DNA of 64,000 bases from Vitrella brassicaformis CCMP3155 (GCA_001179505.1 CDMY01000406.1:21424-85423); one strand, 5' to 3'. Shown: positions 1-52,096, numbered from the stretch's first letter. Numbers and translations: made by a program. Notes: generated by a model from the letters alone, not told the origin.

Positions 1-384
1 AAATGCATCACACTGGACGCCGGGAGGTGTTGTCCAGCGGCCGCTGGGCCTCTTGAAGTGGATGTTTGGTGAAGTCCAGCCGGTGAAGTACAGGATGTGC
101 ATCTTTGCCACGCCCCGAGACGTCTGGTCGATGTCATACAGTAGATCTGAGGAAAGAAGGGAGTTGCGAAAGATTCCCAGCAGCTCCTGTTGCTGAGTGC
201 GGGTGACGATCTGTGAGCGGAGAGCGGCTCGCGTGGCATTGTCAGTCGACATGGCCATGCGGGCCATCTTGCTGATGGGCAAAGACATGTCAAAGAGGTC
301 GGCGGGCTGGAAGAGGGCATCGCTGGGGGGCTGCGACGAGGGCGCTGCACCAGTGGGCTGCATCAGTCGTGATTGTGGGGTCAT
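1..384 (-). CDS. 5' part of a CBM25/26-like starch-binding-repeat protein (runs off the window start)
   Basis: Reverse complement of 1-146 reads DLLYDIDQTSRGVAKMHILYFTGWTSPNIHFKRPSGRWTTPPGVQCDAF, with the Y.TGW..P.IH....W T.PG pattern of CBM25/26. Homologous to exons at 51.5 kb and 53.35 kb. Candidate ATG at 384; upstream exon structure uncertain. Confidence 0.6.
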   Translation of the reverse strand, partial: MTPQSRLMQPTGAAPSSQPPSDALFQPADLFDMSLPISKMARMAMSTDNATRAALRSQIVTRTQQQELLGIFRNSLLSSDLLYDIDQTSRGVAKMHILYFTGWTSPNIHFKRPSGRWTTPPGVQCDAF

Positions 385-568: not shown

Positions 569-651
569 TGGGGGATTTGGGGCTTTGCATGCATTTCGCG
601 AAGCGTAGCGATCCCGCCAGCCCGACGGAGGAGGGAAATCCATATCGACTG

Positions 652-2198
652 ATGCCCCACAGCGGCGTCAAATCGCAGGATCTCGGCATCTCCATCCCTT
701 TGGTCCTCTTCCTCTGCCCCATCCTGCTGCTCTTTTCCCTCCCGCCCTCCTGCCTCACTGAGGCATTCACGTCCCTGCCGGTGGTGTCGGTCAACACGAG
801 CCTCTACTACCCCGCCGGCAACCGCTTGGCGTGTCTGGTCGACCGCAGCATCATGTTTGCCATGAATCGTGCGCTGACGGAGCTCAAGGCGGCCGAGGGC
901 AATCAGAATCTCATGGCCAGGTGGGCGGCGCCCGTCGAGGAGGGCGGGGCGGGAGAGACCAACTACCGGTGGGCGAAGATAAGATGGGCTTTGCTTTGTC
1001 TTCTCCTTTGTGTTCACTGCCATCTCTCCTCTGATTGCCCTCTGTGTGATTGTTTGTGTCAGGTTGGCAATCGATTGTGGTTTGGACACCGCCCAGTTCC
1101 CATGGCCGCCGGTGGTCAACGGCAGCAGGCTGCAAAAAGCGCTCGAGCGCAAGGTGATACGCATGCACTCACAGAAGGACACAAAGACAGAGAAACAAGA
1201 CGCTGCCTCTCGTTGTTCTGTTGCCCTTTGTTGTCAGTCGTTGAACTTGGCTTCCTTTGTGTTGCCGCAAGAGGAGGCGGAGCCCCCGGTAATTCGGACG
1301 GCCATCGACATCGCCCGGGCCGAGGCAGCGACCATTGGCCGGCACTACATCGGCGAGCCGCTGGGAATCGAAGTCATCAAGTACAGCTCGGCGGCAGAGA
1401 CACTCGCGGTGAGTGAGTGGGGGAGTGAGACACGGCAACTGTCGGTGTCTCACTGATGGCTGTCAGGAGTTGAACAGCGGCAATGTCGACCTGACATTGC
1501 CGTGGTTTGCCAAGGGCGGGCTGATCGGCGAGAGGACGTCCCCAAAGGGCATGATGGGGCGCACTGTGGCCTTCGACGTGGGCTGCGACGCCGCCATCAA
1601 CCAGTACATTGTGTCCGTGTCAAGACTCAAGAGTGAGGGACGCTTGCGCGTGTGTCGGTGCAATGATTCTCTCATATGTGTGTGTGTGTGTGTGTGTGTG
1701 TCTTGTGTCTGTGCAGCCTGGAAAACGTTTGACGACCTGCAGCAGGCAGGCGCAGAGCTCAAGATGGTCACCGCTTACTCAGGTGAGTGCATCACGTCTT
1801 AGTGGACAAGAATGTGCGTGTGTGTGTGTGTGTATTCCTCTCTCATGGCTGCAGGTCGGTACAGCATCTTGAGTGCCATATTCCCGTTGGCCGAGATCGT
1901 TTTCGACCCCCATGTCAACGAAAAGAGCGAATTTGTGGCCTTTCTGGCGGGCAATATCACAGGTCAGAGGCTATACAGTCTGTCCACACGAACATGCACA
2001 CGGTCCCATCCAGTCACCACGCCCCTCCCCTCTCTGTCTGTCTGTGTGTGTGCAGGTATTCTCGGTGACAAGTCGCGCATCCGCTCGACGACGGGCATCC
2101 CCTCGGGCTTCCTGGACCTGCTGTTCGAGGAGGTCAACACGGGCATACTCGTGCCCATCACGGCCTTCTACCCCGCACCCGGACACCTCTGCCCATGA
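652..2198 (+). CDS. Secreted family-3 (PBP2/SBP_bac_3-like) solute-binding protein, copy A, about 7 exons
   Basis: Hydrophobic signal-like N-terminus, then exons MNRALTELKAAEG..MARW / GSRLQKALERK / AIDIARAEAATIG / ELNSGNVDL / KTFDDLQ / LSAIFPLAEIV / GILGD..AFYPAPGHLCP*. GT-AG introns with TG tracts. Near-identical inverted copy at 49039-50561. Confidence 0.7.
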
Positions 2199-2272: not shown

Positions 2273-4659
2273 TCATTGGGGTGCGAGCATGGCGAATTCG
2301 GCCATGAGGGGGAGGTGGTCGGATGGGAAGAGGGCAGAGGGGAGGGCCGTGTGCTGGCTGCACACAATAACACACACACACACACACGCACACAGACAGA
2401 CAGACAGTGGATAGATGGACCAGCTCTATTTGTCGGACATTGTGTGTGCATCCGTGTGTGTGTATCTGTGTGCGGCGTGGGGTGCTCACCTGAGTGCGTC
2501 CTCCTGTGGCAATTTGATGGCCTCGACGGCCACGAGGTCGGGCCCCTCGAAGAACAGATAGTCGAGACACCCTGAATGAAGACCATGCACATTTGTTACA
2601 CACGTGTCAAGCTTGACACCCTCCGGTGGGGCCACCGGTGCATATCGCTTACCTTTGAATGCCACCGTGTAATTGGTGAACTGAGGCTCTTGGCCGAACA
2701 CCTCTCTGTAAGCACTCCGATAGGGCTGCACTTGCAACGAAGGCACCGCCTGCATCGGGATCTTGTGCCGACGGGTCACCTGGTTGACCAACACAACACA
2801 TACAGCAGAGAAAGGCTCCGTCTGCTGCTGCTGCTGCATGAACCAGCCGAGTGACTCAAGTGGCTTACTCACCGGATGGTCGGGATGGTCCGCCCCCACC
2901 GTCCCCTGTGTCAGCAGCTGGTACACACCACTGTACAGCCGACCAACATCCTCCGCACTCTCGCTCTCCACAGCAACACCATCACCATCACCATCAGTCC
3001 GCCCTTTGTCTCCCTGCTGCTCGGTCGGCTCACTGCTGCCGGCGATTTCAGCTGGCGGGTCGGCGGCAGACCGTGTGGTGCGCATGGAGAAGCCCTGCAC
3101 GTGGAAGGGCGAAGGGGGCGTGGGGCTGCCCGGCCGGGCCACAGCCACAGACGGAGGGCTCGATGAGGGGGGATGGGTCTCGGGGACCTGTTAGTGGACA
3201 AAACGTAGATAGCTTCACACGGCATGTGTGTGTGCGTGTGTGCGGGAGGAGCTTACGGGAGGGTGTCTGAGCGACTGGTTGAGCGTGCGTGATCCGCTCT
3301 TGGCGGGCGCCTGATACCGGGCGGCGAGAGAGGGCAGCTCGGGGTCATACCGATCGGCGTGAACCTGATTGACGCACACACACACACACAGCAATGGGGC
3401 AGGGTGCCGCTGAATGCCTGTCTGTCGGTCGGTCTGTGTGTGTGTGTGTCGATTTGCCTTGTATGGGACCGAGTTGAAGTCGCCCGCCAGGATGCAACCG
3501 CCCTGCGGCTGCTTCTCGGGACTGCTCTTGGCGAACTCCTCGCAATACGCCGACACCTCCTGGTGGCTCGCACACACACGTTTGTCTGCCGGTGTGTCTG
3601 TCTGCCGGTGGTGTGAATTCGACCCATCTCCTACCTTTGCCAGGATGTAGGCCTGTAGGAGCTTGATGTCGGGGAAGAGAGGGTCCCAGAAGAGATGGGT
3701 CGACACCACGTGCACCACTGGACCGCTCTGAGTGATTTGATTCGACGCCCACAGAGAAAAAGACAGGGGCAGCATTCACTCACTTCCAGCCATATATCCG
3801 TTTGTGTGCGTGTATGTGTCTCACGGGCATGAGTGAGAAGGATGCGATGACGGCCATGTTGAGCTTCTCCTTCAGCTCACGCCACAGAGCCCACTGCACC
3901 TGGCAACACACAATGGAGTCACAACCACATGGAGGAATTGATGGATGGATGGATGGATGTGCTTGCCTTACATCTGTGCCGGTCATGTGCATGTGTTGGC
4001 TGAACCACTTGTCCAGCAGCGAATTGAACCGAAACGTCTGTGTCGACAACAGCCGGAATACCTCGGGCCTGCACAACCGCCCCAACACACACACACACAC
4101 ACACACGCACACACACACACGCACACACACACACACACACATGATGACACCGACGGACACACACAGAAAGAAGGAACGTACCTGTAGAAGATTGCGCACC
4201 CGTCCCCGCTCGGCAGCGTCGAGTTGAACATGTGCACCGCCTTACGGTATCCCCCCGCACCCAGAGAGGTCGACAGCTGGTCCAGTGACACCTGCTCAGC
4301 CTTCCAGACAGCCGACACACACATCACACACGCGCACACCTCTGCGTGTCTGTCTGCCTGTGTGTGACGGACCTCCTGCAGGCAGAGTATGTCGGGGTCA
4401 TGGTGCAGCAGCTCCTTCTCTATCCTGGACATCCGCACCGGAAACTTGAGGACACTCGGGGCGCAATAAAAGTACTTGGACGACCGCAGAGCGTCCAGCT
4501 GCACCGACCGATGAGAGAGTGAGAAATGACAGGCACATCACATGCCGACCCTCGCTGCGCTGTGTGTGTGCCATGTCATTGCGGGTGGCTGACCCGCCTC
4601 ACCCTGTGCATGATGTTGTAGGTGAGGACCCTGAACGTGCGGACCGTCCCAGCAGACAT
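2273..4659 (-). CDS. CCR4/nocturnin/angel-like endonuclease-exonuclease-phosphatase (EEP) family protein
   Basis: Motifs in order: FRVLTYNIM, DPDILCLQE, GDGCAIFYR, STHLFWDP, ILAGDFNSVP, FTNYT..FKGCLDYLF, FPSDHLPLMAEF followed by TGA (2273-2275). Confidence 0.9.
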
Positions 4660-7199: not shown

Positions 7200-7903
7200 A
7201 TGGGTACTCCTGGAGACGGCCCTTATGAGTACCCGGGACAGCCACTGGCACGGCTCCCATCAGACATGAGCAGCAATGCACCGCTGGGGCTCTATGACGG
7301 TACGGATGGTACCTCACTCAGACACTCACTCCACACACTAACATTCGTCGCGTCTGTCCGGGTGCAGAGCTGACGAACGACCCATTCTTCCGAAAACAGG
7401 ATGAATCACAGGGTGAGCAAAGCATTCGAAGGAGCCGAAGCAGTGTGTCACTCCCGCATGTGGTGGTTGCTTGCGGCTGTGAATGTCAGGTATGGACTAC
7501 GGCGTCCCGCGGCTGCCGTCGCTGAGCATGACGCCCACACCTCGAGGCAGCGAAAACGGCGACAGTGACATGGGCATCGGCATCGGCAGCCAGGCAGGCG
7601 TGGGCGGCCAGCAGCAGCCCATGCAGATGGGCATGATGGCTGGTGGTGGTGGTGCAAACGGAGGGGCGGGGACGCAGATGATGATGCAGAGCGACGCCAT
7701 GACACAGCAGGCGGCCATGCAGGGGTGAGCAGAGATCAGATCAGATGGACGCTCACTCGAAGTCGGTTGGCCTCACTCTCTCTCTTTCTCCATGCTGCGT
7801 CTGTTTTGCTGGCAGTCTGCTGCAGTCGTCCTCCATGCCGCCCTCTCTGCTGCCCTACCACCACCAGCCGCCCATGTACCCATCACCATACGAGCAGCAC
7901 CGT

Positions 7904-49038: not shown

Positions 49039-50561
49039 TCATGGGCAGAGGTGTCCGGGTGCGGGGTAGAAGGCCGTGATGGGCACGAGTATGCCCGTGT
49101 TGACCTCCTCGAACAGCAGGTCCAGGAAGCCCGAGGGGATGCCCGTCGTCGAGCGGATGCGCGACTTGTCACCGAGAATCCCTGCACACAGACAGACACA
49201 CAGAGAGGGGAGGGGCGTGGTGACTGGATGGGAGCATGTGCATGTTCGTGTGGACAGACTGTATAGCTTCCGACTGACCTGTAATATTGCCCGCCAGGAA
49301 GGCCACAAATTCGCTCTTCTCGTTGACATGGGGGTCGAAAACGATCTCAGCCAACGGGAATATGGCACTCAACATGCTGTACCGACCTGCAGCCATGAGA
49401 GAGGATTACACACACACAGACGCACATTCTCTCTCACTGAGATGGGACGCATGCACCTGAGTAGGCGGTGACCATCTTGAGCTCTGCGCCTGCCTGCTGC
49501 AGGTCGTCAAACGTCTTCCAGCCTACACAGACACAAGACACACACACACACGCACACATGAGAATCATTGCAGCGACACACACGCAAGCGTCCCTCACTC
49601 TTGAGTCTTGACACGGACACAATGTACTGATTTATTGCGGCGTCGCAGCCCGAGTCGAAGGCCACAGTGCGGCCCATCATGCCCTCAGGCGACGTCCTCT
49701 CGCCTATCAGCCCGCCCTTGGCAAACCACGGCAATGTCAGGTCGACATTGCCGCTGTTCAACTCCTGCCAGCCATCAGTGAGACACCGACAGTCGCCGTG
49801 TCTCACTCCCCCACTCACTCACCGCGAGTGTCTCTGCCTCCGAGCTGTACTTGATGACTTCGATTCCCAGCGGCTCGCCGATGTAGTGCCGGCCAATGGT
49901 CGCTGCCTCGGCCCGGGCGATATCGATGGCCGTCCGAATTACCGGGGGCTCCGCCTCCTCTTGCGGCAACACAAAGGAAGCCAACTTCAATGACTGACAA
50001 CAAAGGGCAACAGAAAACGTAAAAGGCTGTCTGTCTGTCTGTCTTTGCGTCCTTCTGTGAGTGCATGTGTGTCACCTTGCGCTCGAGTGCTTTCTGCAGT
50101 CTGCTGCCGTTGACCACCGGCGGCCATGGGAACTGAGCGGTGTCCAAACCACAATCGATTGCCAACCTGACACAAACGATCACACAGACAAACAGAGGAG
50201 AGTGACAGTAAAAGCACAAAGGACAATGGCCCATCTTCCCTCACCGGTAGTTGGTCTCTCCCGCCCCGCCCTCCTCGACGGGCGCCGTCCACCTGGCCAT
50301 GAGACTCTGGTTGCCCTCGGCCGCCTTGAGCTCCGTCAGTGCACGATTCATGGCAAACATGACGCTGCGGTCGACCAGACACGCCGACCCGTTGCCGGCG
50401 GGGTAGTAGAGCGTCGTGTTGACCGACACCACCGGCAGGGACGGGAATGCCTCAGTGAGGCAGGAGGGCGGGAGGGAAAAGAGCAGCAGGATGGAGCAGA
50501 GCAAGAGGACCAAATGGATGGAGATGCCGACATCCTGCGATTTGACGCCGCTGCGCAGCAT
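49039..50561 (-). CDS. Secreted family-3 solute-binding-like protein, copy B (inverted duplicate of 652-2198)
   Basis: All exons present with the same introns and scattered substitutions (PKG/PEG, DVG/DSG, NQNL/NQSL); frame appears intact. Confidence 0.75.
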
Positions 50562-50648
50562 CAGTCGACTCGCCGGCTGGCGTCTCCTCAAGCCCGGGGG
50601 CCCCCGCCCCCAACTTGAACTTTGAATGATTCTCCCTTCCCTCCCCCG

Positions 50649-52096
50649 ATGACGAGTTTCAAGGACCTCATCGACCGGGCCAAGCCCTCTCTGGACAGCC
50701 CACCGCCCTCAAGTTGGCGCAGCTCGGCTCCCTGCTGCCACACGACGTGTGGCAAGGCGTCAACATCAGCCGCAACGAGGTGACTATTGGATCATGGGGG
50801 AACGGCGACACGACTCCCACTTGCTGTGATCTGTGCGTCCAGGTGGATTTCAGGAGGCCCGGCAACCACATCGTCAGTACCCTCACGGGCAGAGATGGGG
50901 AGACAGCTTCTGACAGGCACTAAGACGTCTGACCTTGTGTCGGCTGTGTGGTGTGTGTTGATCTTCTCAGCTGTACCGGTCGGGCTGGCAACCCCCAGCG
51001 TGCCACTTCAGCCACGGGTCGGCCGAGTGGACTGACCGTGAGTGCCTGTCGCTGGGGGGAGGCCTGTGGTACATGCATATTCCGAGGAATATTCAGCACC
51101 GGGTAAGCAGAGGCGTGGGAGGCAGCTAGGGGATTCAAAGCATAAGTATGACGATGCGTTCAACTAAGTCATGTCATGCAGGAGGTGGAGTTCGTTATGT
51201 GTGACGCTAGTCGAAGCCAATGGGATCACCCACCGTCACACACTGGAAGTCAGTGATTCACTGTGTGTGCACCTCAGTCCAGGGATGCAAGCAAGATATA
51301 TGATTCACTGTGACAAGCTTTGTCTTGCTGTGCTGCTCTGCTGTGTTCCTCAGTGCCCAACTACCCCGTTTGGACAGAGGGGGTCTATATGTTGAGTGAC
51401 GGAAGCCTGAAATCCCTGAGAAGTGACGTCGGTTGGGATTATGTCGGTAAGAAGCTGACGAGAGACAGACGGTTTTTCATCAAAAATCCAGCTTCTTATT
51501 GGTTCGTCAGACTTGCTGTTCATCCGCGACAAGGTGGCGCGAGAGGCAGCAGAGGCGCACGTTCTCTACTTCACCGGCTGGACCCCACCCCGCATCCACT
51601 TCCGACATACCAACAGTTGCTGGACAGAGCCTCCAGGCATCGTGTGCAATGCGTTTTCCGGCCGCGTGTGGCATGCGCAAATGCCATTCCATAGCGTAAG
51701 CTGCACATCGCACAGAGACCCACGAGTGGGCGAAATGTGCTTTCTCTTATGCCGAATGTGTATGTGTCTCCACTCCACTCAGGGTCTTGAGTTCGTCCTA
51801 AATGACGGGAGCGGCTCTTAGGATCACGCTCCAGGAGGTGAAGGAAGCACAGAGACAAAACAAGCTTTAGGGATGCCACACGGTCTGGATATCCTTCTCT
51901 GCTTGCCACTATGGTGTGTTTGCGTATGCCTGCAGGTGGCAACTACGTTCTCCGAGACGCTGGCCTGTACTTGCTGGTTGACGGAGAAATCCTGCGGCCG
52001 GAGTCTCTTCGTCATCGGCAGGACCTTCTCCGGTTTGTTGTCTCTGGTCTGAGGCCCGCGTTGAGAGAGGCCTCAGGTGCGACACAAATGCGATGA
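50649..52096 (+). pseudogene. Tandem CBM25/26-like repeat gene with an in-frame TAG and a probable 5' frameshift
   Basis: Repeat 1: HI|LYRSGWQPPACHFSHGSAEWTD..WYMHIP..EVEFVMCDASRSQWDHPP..NYPVWTEGVYML. Repeat 2: DLLFIRDK..HVLYFTGWTPPRIHF..WTEPPG..GLEFVLNDGSGS*DHAPG|GNYVLRDAGLY. The TAG at 51819-51821 sits at the conserved Trp. ATG 50649 is out of frame with the LAQLGSLL exon. Confidence 0.7.

Follow-up and report, generated by a model that had tools for sequence, protein, structure and literature searches.

Described binding proteins and the Vitrella gene

The bacterial solute-binding proteins of family 3 (PF00497), among them HisJ, LAO, GlnH, ArtJ and cyclohexadienyl dehydratase, are two-lobed proteins, and the succession of their elements in lobe 1 and lobe 2 is the same as that read in the protein described here. 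This protein, the target, is the product of a gene at positions 652–2,198 of a stretch of 64,000 nucleotides of Vitrella brassicaformis CCMP3155 (the window; C406:21424-85423 in an assembly of 72.7 Mb). In contrast to the bacterial proteins, the target would carry the terminal strand and the two terminal helices in front, followed by a new cysteine-containing linker; it is encoded by a eukaryotic, intron-rich gene without transporter genes nearby, and scores below all family cut-offs. From the order of its elements, the target is likely a class II binding protein that has undergone circular permutation in nature. The permuted arrangement is most likely common to at least five sister genes, and apparently also to PfVFT1 of Plasmodium falciparum.

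A natural circular permutant, TpMglB-2 ('Type Ic / Cluster Bc') of Treponema pallidum, is known from a crystal structure; it keeps ligand binding and closure (PMC4990184). Unlike the target, TpMglB-2 is a class I (sugar-binding) protein and a bacterial lipoprotein, and three strands of its N-lobe were moved to the C-terminus, in the opposite direction. PfVFT1 is a 35-kDa protein that has a signal peptide and no anchor, of unknown function, which is considered specific to P. falciparum and is a candidate for a malaria blood-stage vaccine (PMC13199436, PMC3245289). The target resembles it as a predicted secreted and unanchored protein with a single bilobed flytrap, and the apicomplexans are the sister lineage of the chromerids; it differs from PfVFT1 in that no sequence similarity was detected, and the link is indirect, via a model of the sister family. 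The structure of PfVFT1 (PDB 5JKQ, gene PF3D7_0606800) was reportedly described by Parker et al. in 2017 (Protein Sci 26:1878). No description of a class II, family-3 permutant was found in the literature, the original paper on the PfVFT1 structure not being covered. An earlier note on this DNA, made from the sequence alone, had proposed a free, non-receptor periplasmic binding protein in a eukaryote; a soluble protein is indeed predicted, but it is not unique, as PfVFT1 and other Vitrella copies exist.

Order of elements in the target and in the sister family

The target is a real spliced gene, matched exactly by the public model. The window is eukaryotic DNA, with short GT-AG introns and (GT)n runs. 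The chain rebuilt from the splice sites has seven exons with GT-AG borders throughout, and translates exactly to P0152, the public V. brassicaformis protein CEM10925.1 of 374 residues. This identity needs the ATG at 589; the start at 652, given in the earlier note, is the conserved one, because the paralogues are without the upstream ATG. P0002, a transcript-derived paralogue product (363 residues, contig of 1513 nucleotides (nt), 90% identical to the target over exon 1), shows the same splice pattern; it begins 10 codons before the ATG and has the same stop as the target. P0001 and P0002 are spliced products, since their contigs (901 and 1513 nt) are too short for the unspliced gene. The 3' border of exon 1 is 968, not 920 (from the already spliced P0002). 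Introns 2, 4 and 6 (1154–1237, 1633–1716 and 1963–2055; 84, 84 and 93 nt) are stop-free multiples of three, so that retention of any of them would leave the frame intact; the paralogue has similar stop-free stretches. Single exons, or the database proteins P0152, P0153, P0002 and P0003, were used as queries for the target. Its features, in window coordinates, are the following.

589–968 (+): exon 1, with leader, strand, two helices and start of the linker; annotated ATG at 589, paralogue-conserved ATG at 652
652–768 (+): hydrophobic leader, putative signal peptide ending near ...CLTEA, as read in the sequence; conserved in the C406 paralogues
781–822 (+): strand-like VSVNTSLYYPAGN, read by eye, against ...IAFPKG..., as beta18, the return strand of canonical proteins, shifted to the front
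841–924 (+): two helices, P0152 residues 85–112, similar to the canonical C-terminal helices by hhalign; helical in the AlphaFold model
925–968 (+): first half of the new linker, with the fn3-like motif W-A-P-x-x-G-G
1063–1153 (+): exon 2, with the second half of the linker and its conserved Cys (IDCG), then the helix before canonical strand 1
1238–1408 (+): exon 3, with lobe 1 from strand 1 through helix 1 and strand 2 into the first part of helix 2
1467–1632 (+): exon 4, with the remaining lobe 1 and the crossover to lobe 2; G-E-R-T, which maps by hand to the T-x-x-R site, and a conserved Cys where canonical proteins have F-S
1717–1782 (+): exon 5, lobe 2
1855–1962 (+): exon 6, lobe 2
2056–2198 (+): exon 7, with ITGILGD as the final strand of lobe 2, then a helix and the return strands ...AFYPAPGHLCP; stop at 2196–2198

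The motif order proposed in the earlier note was found in the chain: a leader, VSVNTSLYYPAGN, a helix of the type N-x-A-L-x-E-L-K ... W, a linker and a canonical-looking start. The helix does not come straight after the signal peptide, as had been claimed, since about 25 residues, the strand included, intervene. The proposed equivalence of this helix with the canonical C-terminal helix is supported by the single best profile match. When the target family was compared by hhalign with canonical profiles, one built from seven Escherichia coli proteins and another from 87 sequences, the only match was that of residues 85–113 on the canonical C-terminal helices, gapless (P values of 0.0024, 0.002 and 0.0057). 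The matches start at residue 85 and thus exclude the strand segment VSVNTSLYYPAGN, which is kept in the divergent paralogue. In the PDB profile search, GluR0 was matched in two stretches in permuted order (expectation value, E, of 1.3).

The rest of the chain was mapped on HisJ element by element. Fifteen canonical strands and helices follow in succession from residue ~158 to ...ITGILGD. After this last lobe-2 strand about 40 residues remain in the target, against about 70 in the canonical proteins, which leaves room for one helix and the return strands, and not for two terminal helices; no terminal helix pair follows the return strands of exon 7. The chain therefore ends before the terminal helix, as stated in the earlier note, and its ...AFYPAPG resembles the canonical ...IAFPKG. 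The overlap in sequence between both ends, also proposed there, was recovered over broad windows with a z of 2.0 (89 of 2000 shuffles), but it is weak; in tight windows chosen post hoc, the C406 copies gave a z of 3.6 (38 of 5000 shuffles). It is absent in the divergent C759 paralogue (P0003), the signature being limited to one lineage.

The genome's own PF00497 matches led to genes on C206, C458 and C446, referred to here as the sister family, which gives the strongest, though indirect, support for the permutation. These genes have Pfam SBP_bac_3 scores of 32.1 and 40.6 bits (cut-off 26.4), and match solved proteins of the cyclohexadienyl dehydratase type with an E of 2.6e-7. Their pieces were compared, in gene order, with a canonical profile of 320 columns.

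Piece a: canonical columns 275–304, P 8.6e-5
Piece b: canonical columns 70–115, P 2.7e-9
Piece c: canonical columns 129–153, P 0.009
Piece d: canonical columns 187–206, P 0.14
Piece e: canonical columns 208–232, P 0.0016

The same permuted order of pieces was obtained with HMMER. The helix segment and the canonical start lie within one open frame or exon (the first three pieces in C458), and thus splicing errors cannot explain the order in the sister family. Upstream of the helix segment there is no other lobe, only an acidic linker and Y-Y-F repeats. The C206 and C458 chains stop right after the strand that precedes the return strand, and C446 shows, by eye, a return strand at both ends. The query with the lobe piece of the sister family against 301 sampled proteobacterial genomes gave only canonical matches, which start after the helix segment, and no permuted order.

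Some further characteristics of these genes were recorded. The N-terminal repeats are of the type C-x-N-G-T-x-F-F-T-x-D-G-x-T-Y-Y-F (L091 1121-1282 and 693-842; L096 5034-5516; L094 7900-8100) and bear a faint resemblance to repeats that bind choline or the cell wall (Pfam E of 0.058). The TAA of C206 (L091 2620-2632) and the TGA of C458 (L094 6070-6080, minus strand) overlap good AG|GT donor sites, and to judge from these sites both stop codons could instead be spliced out. An assembly gap (N run) at L094 ~7560-7860, about 400 base pairs (bp) upstream of the helix segment, makes the 5' part of C458 uncertain. Another PF00497 match, on C847 (15.6 kb), was set aside because it appears to be a bacterial contaminant of the assembly; C847 is AT-rich and intron-free, and L090 911-1648 (−) encodes an ordinary bacterial family-3 binding protein of 245 residues.

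The target and sister families may be related, through a link that is weak but consistent. For four of the five sister pieces the best score falls on the corresponding band of the target family (p of about 0.007 by chance placement), among them the sister helix segment on residues 85–114 and, on ...ITAFYPAPGH, the end of C446. Two cysteines absent from canonical proteins occur in both families, one within the new linker and one at the canonical F-S site.

For structural comparison, the contiguous C458 piece of 172 residues, which comprises the whole lobe 1 in permuted order, was folded with an alignment devoid of canonical C-terminal rows, dropped once they were found misaligned. The model had a predicted local distance difference test score (pLDDT) of 70 and a predicted template modelling score (pTM) of 0.66, and its leading segment formed two helices (pLDDT 66–77). 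Compared with 48,161 PDB representatives, the sole chain with Z ≥ 8 was 5jkq, that is PfVFT1 (Z 12.3–12.4; next 6.7), over 140–144 residues and from model residues 3–172 to chain residues 22–236, N-terminal helices included. Canonical proteins align to residues 73–169 of the model only. 5jkq was absent from all PDB sequence and profile searches (E up to 10), so no sequence homology with PfVFT1 was detectable in them. That the chromerid and apicomplexan flytraps constitute an old family, derived from a permuted bacterial family-3 protein, with a disulfide-stapled linker and with PfVFT1 as its sole solved member, is a tentative proposal and a rather doubtful one.

Fold assignment and rival explanations

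The target very probably has the class II binding-protein fold of family 3 type, an assignment that is supported by models, not proven. In the ESM Atlas, the model of P0152 (pLDDT 0.54, pTM 0.52) has SBP_bac_3 clusters as its nearest feature clusters (0.94–0.96), and canonical SBP_bac_3 clusters align to residues 140–366 of this low-confidence model, with template modelling scores by row of 0.58–0.63; among SBP_bac_3 clusters as a whole these scores span 0.58–0.66. The AlphaFold model of the target was computed without canonical sequences in the alignment, because MAFFT misplaces them and the outcome would be circular. In this weak model, residues 145–252 align with the N-terminal lobe of family-3 proteins of solved structure (Z 5.0–5.3; root-mean-square deviation (rmsd) 2.3–3.6 Å over 69–84 residues). 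Binding proteins make up most of its best 50 PDB rows and place the canonical N-terminus at residue ~145, and its top PDB match is PfVFT1 (5jkq, Z 6.2). The UniRef name of the paralogue is solute-binding family 3 domain protein. The fold proposed in the earlier note is thus supported by the Atlas clusters and the weak AlphaFold model, but no family cut-off was passed and both models are of low confidence.

The Atlas cluster nearest to P0152 in both features and structure is a bacterial family of Pseudomonadota (345 residues, 55 members), which aligns to residues 82–366, leading helices included. Judging from this model alignment, the permuted order could occur in this bacterial family as well. 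Full-length relatives outside Vitrella were not found in word-index searches with exon 1, P0002 and the family profile, nor in a full HMMER scan; bacterial genomes and metagenomes, scanned with target-family or sister-family patterns, gave no relatives, and the target profile gave only noise in five further genomes.

Several results weigh against a permuted binding protein. With P0002 and single exons as queries, Pfam and NCBIfam returned no families at E up to 10, and the SBP_bac_3 (PF00497) profile check recommended in the earlier note left the target below the curated cut-off; no meaningful PDB sequence match was obtained for the target. AlphaFold, with five Vitrella sequences, gave a pLDDT of 36, the rmsd of this model against 5jkq was 13.3 Å, and all of its Z values were below 8. 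The homology between the target and the sister family depends on weak P values of 0.02–0.06 per piece and on the shared cysteines, and the match between C458 and PfVFT1 is not fully independent, because AlphaFold was trained on 5jkq. Finally, MAFFT can align the C-terminal ...GFLDLLFEEVNTG... to a shortened canonical helix pair.

This last alignment belongs to the main rival of permutation, a partial duplication, which is considered unlikely. Residues ~145–374 would then be a complete domain in canonical order, its last 30 residues being the shortened terminal helix pair, and the N-terminal strand and helices a vestigial or oligomerising extra copy. The body of 228 residues is near the full length of a canonical domain, the C-terminus of the divergent paralogue is more helix-like, and the genafpair mode of MAFFT puts GFLDLLFEEVNTG and the next nine residues on the canonical terminal helices. 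However, the fifteen-element mapping leaves a tail of only ~40 residues against the ~70 of the canonical proteins, the hallmark N-x-A-L ... W is at the N-terminus and not at the C-terminus, and the final ILVPITAFY contains proline, carries no charge and is beta-branched. The sister family also counts against a duplication, since it places ...LDLLFEEVN of the tail on the helix before the return strand, and the sister chain stops there. A lineage-specific alpha/beta protein with no binding-protein fold, its motif likeness being due to chance, is very unlikely: it would agree with the lack of Pfam, NCBIfam and PDB sequence matches, the low-confidence AlphaFold model and the low Z values, but the Atlas feature and structure neighbours are all SBP_bac_3, and both the best PDB rows and the UniRef name point to binding proteins.

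The probability is lower still, and close to negligible, for the two remaining explanations. A gene-model artefact would mean that the true gene extends further, as in the case of a tandem multi-domain gene divided during annotation; introns 2, 4 and 6 could be read through, and the window starts only 650 bp upstream. Against this, a CBM25 gene lies 205–267 bp upstream and the end of a convergent gene ~290 bp downstream, and with genes so close on both sides there is no room for extra exons, in agreement with the boxed-in position described in the earlier note. Besides, P0002 shares the stop and starts 10 codons before the ATG, both gene ends are common to three paralogue lineages, and the junction of the sister family lies within one exon. 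As for the N-terminal region being a remnant of a fibronectin type III (fn3) domain, about 200 fn3-repeat giants match P0002 residues ~84–119 in HMMER (summed E as low as 3.5e-32), 36 residues are 39% identical to fn3 strands A–C in BLASTP, and those giants carry Pfam fn3. This significance is inflated, because up to 26 repeats of one short match were summed; P0002 itself has no Pfam fn3 match, the match spans just half a domain, both models show the segment as helical, and W-x-P-x-x-G-G is not conserved in the divergent paralogue. The kinship was rejected and read as a coincidence of a short motif, amplified by repeat summation. In the window, the 36 residues concerned are encoded by 871–966 and 1064–1072 and are 33–39% identical to bacterial fn3 strands A–C (W-x-P-x-x-G-G-x-x-x-x-Y).

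Paralogues, proposed protein and significance

The genes next to the target and its second copy in the window are the following.

Start at 384 (−): CBM25 gene, divergent, 205–267 bp upstream of the target start
Apparent end near 2486 (−): convergent gene, ~290 bp downstream of the target
49042–50561 (−): intact paralogue CEM10955.1 (P0153), head-to-head with a CBM25 gene

The frame 2486–3148 has no Pfam match, and it is probably the last exon of an endonuclease/exonuclease/phosphatase-family gene with exons at 3215–4504, where frames match Exo_endo_phos in Pfam. CBM25-type starch-binding genes stand head-to-head with each intact copy (1–384, minus strand, and ~50600–51100, plus strand). This pairing recurs because the gene pair was duplicated as a unit, and no functional link between the target and CBM25 was seen in the recurring pairs. 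A third copy, upstream on the contig and with exons 1–4 only (L003 748-1728; C406:18244-19227), runs into the neighbouring CBM25 gene, and two copies of exon 1 alone are found on the same contig (L001 2408-2632 and 3740-3964); these partial copies are likely duplication debris or chimeras. The C759 paralogue P0003 has 41% identity to P0152 and shares its architecture all the way from the strand at the N-terminus to the end of the chain.

If permuted, the product of the gene would be a secreted, disulfide-bonded Venus-flytrap protein of ~37 kDa, of solute-binding family 3 type. After the signal peptide would come the strand and the two helices that normally end the chain and complete lobe 1, then a linker of ~35 residues with a conserved cysteine, then the canonical N-terminus and lobes 1 and 2 in normal order, and the chain would end directly after the strands leading back to lobe 1. 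The N-terminal helices would pack at the site of the canonical C-terminal helices, and closure of the cleft on a small ligand would persist. The leader and the four conserved cysteines outside it fit with an oxidising, secretory location, and disulfides are predicted for Cys132 with Cys254 and for Cys82 with Cys373. A partner ABC (ATP-binding cassette) transporter would not be expected, and the protein is therefore proposed to work, on the cell surface or within the secretory pathway, as a sensor partner or soluble binder. By a manual mapping of elements, an Arg (G-E-R-T) and an Asp (...ILGD) would stand at two canonical amino-acid-binding positions; they suggest a putative ligand that is a carboxylate or amino-acid-like.

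To our knowledge, flytrap binding proteins with a natural circular permutation are rare, and biosensor engineers permute these proteins by hand. A class II permutant with a number of diverged copies would reveal in what way a fold of two lobes can accommodate rewiring, which is relevant to biosensor engineering, and the permutation would explain why standard family models miss such genes. Vitrella is a free-living alga related to the malaria parasites. If the link with PfVFT1 is true, an orphan malaria antigen would gain free-living relatives, a likely bacterial ancestry and a testable hypothesis of a small-molecule ligand.
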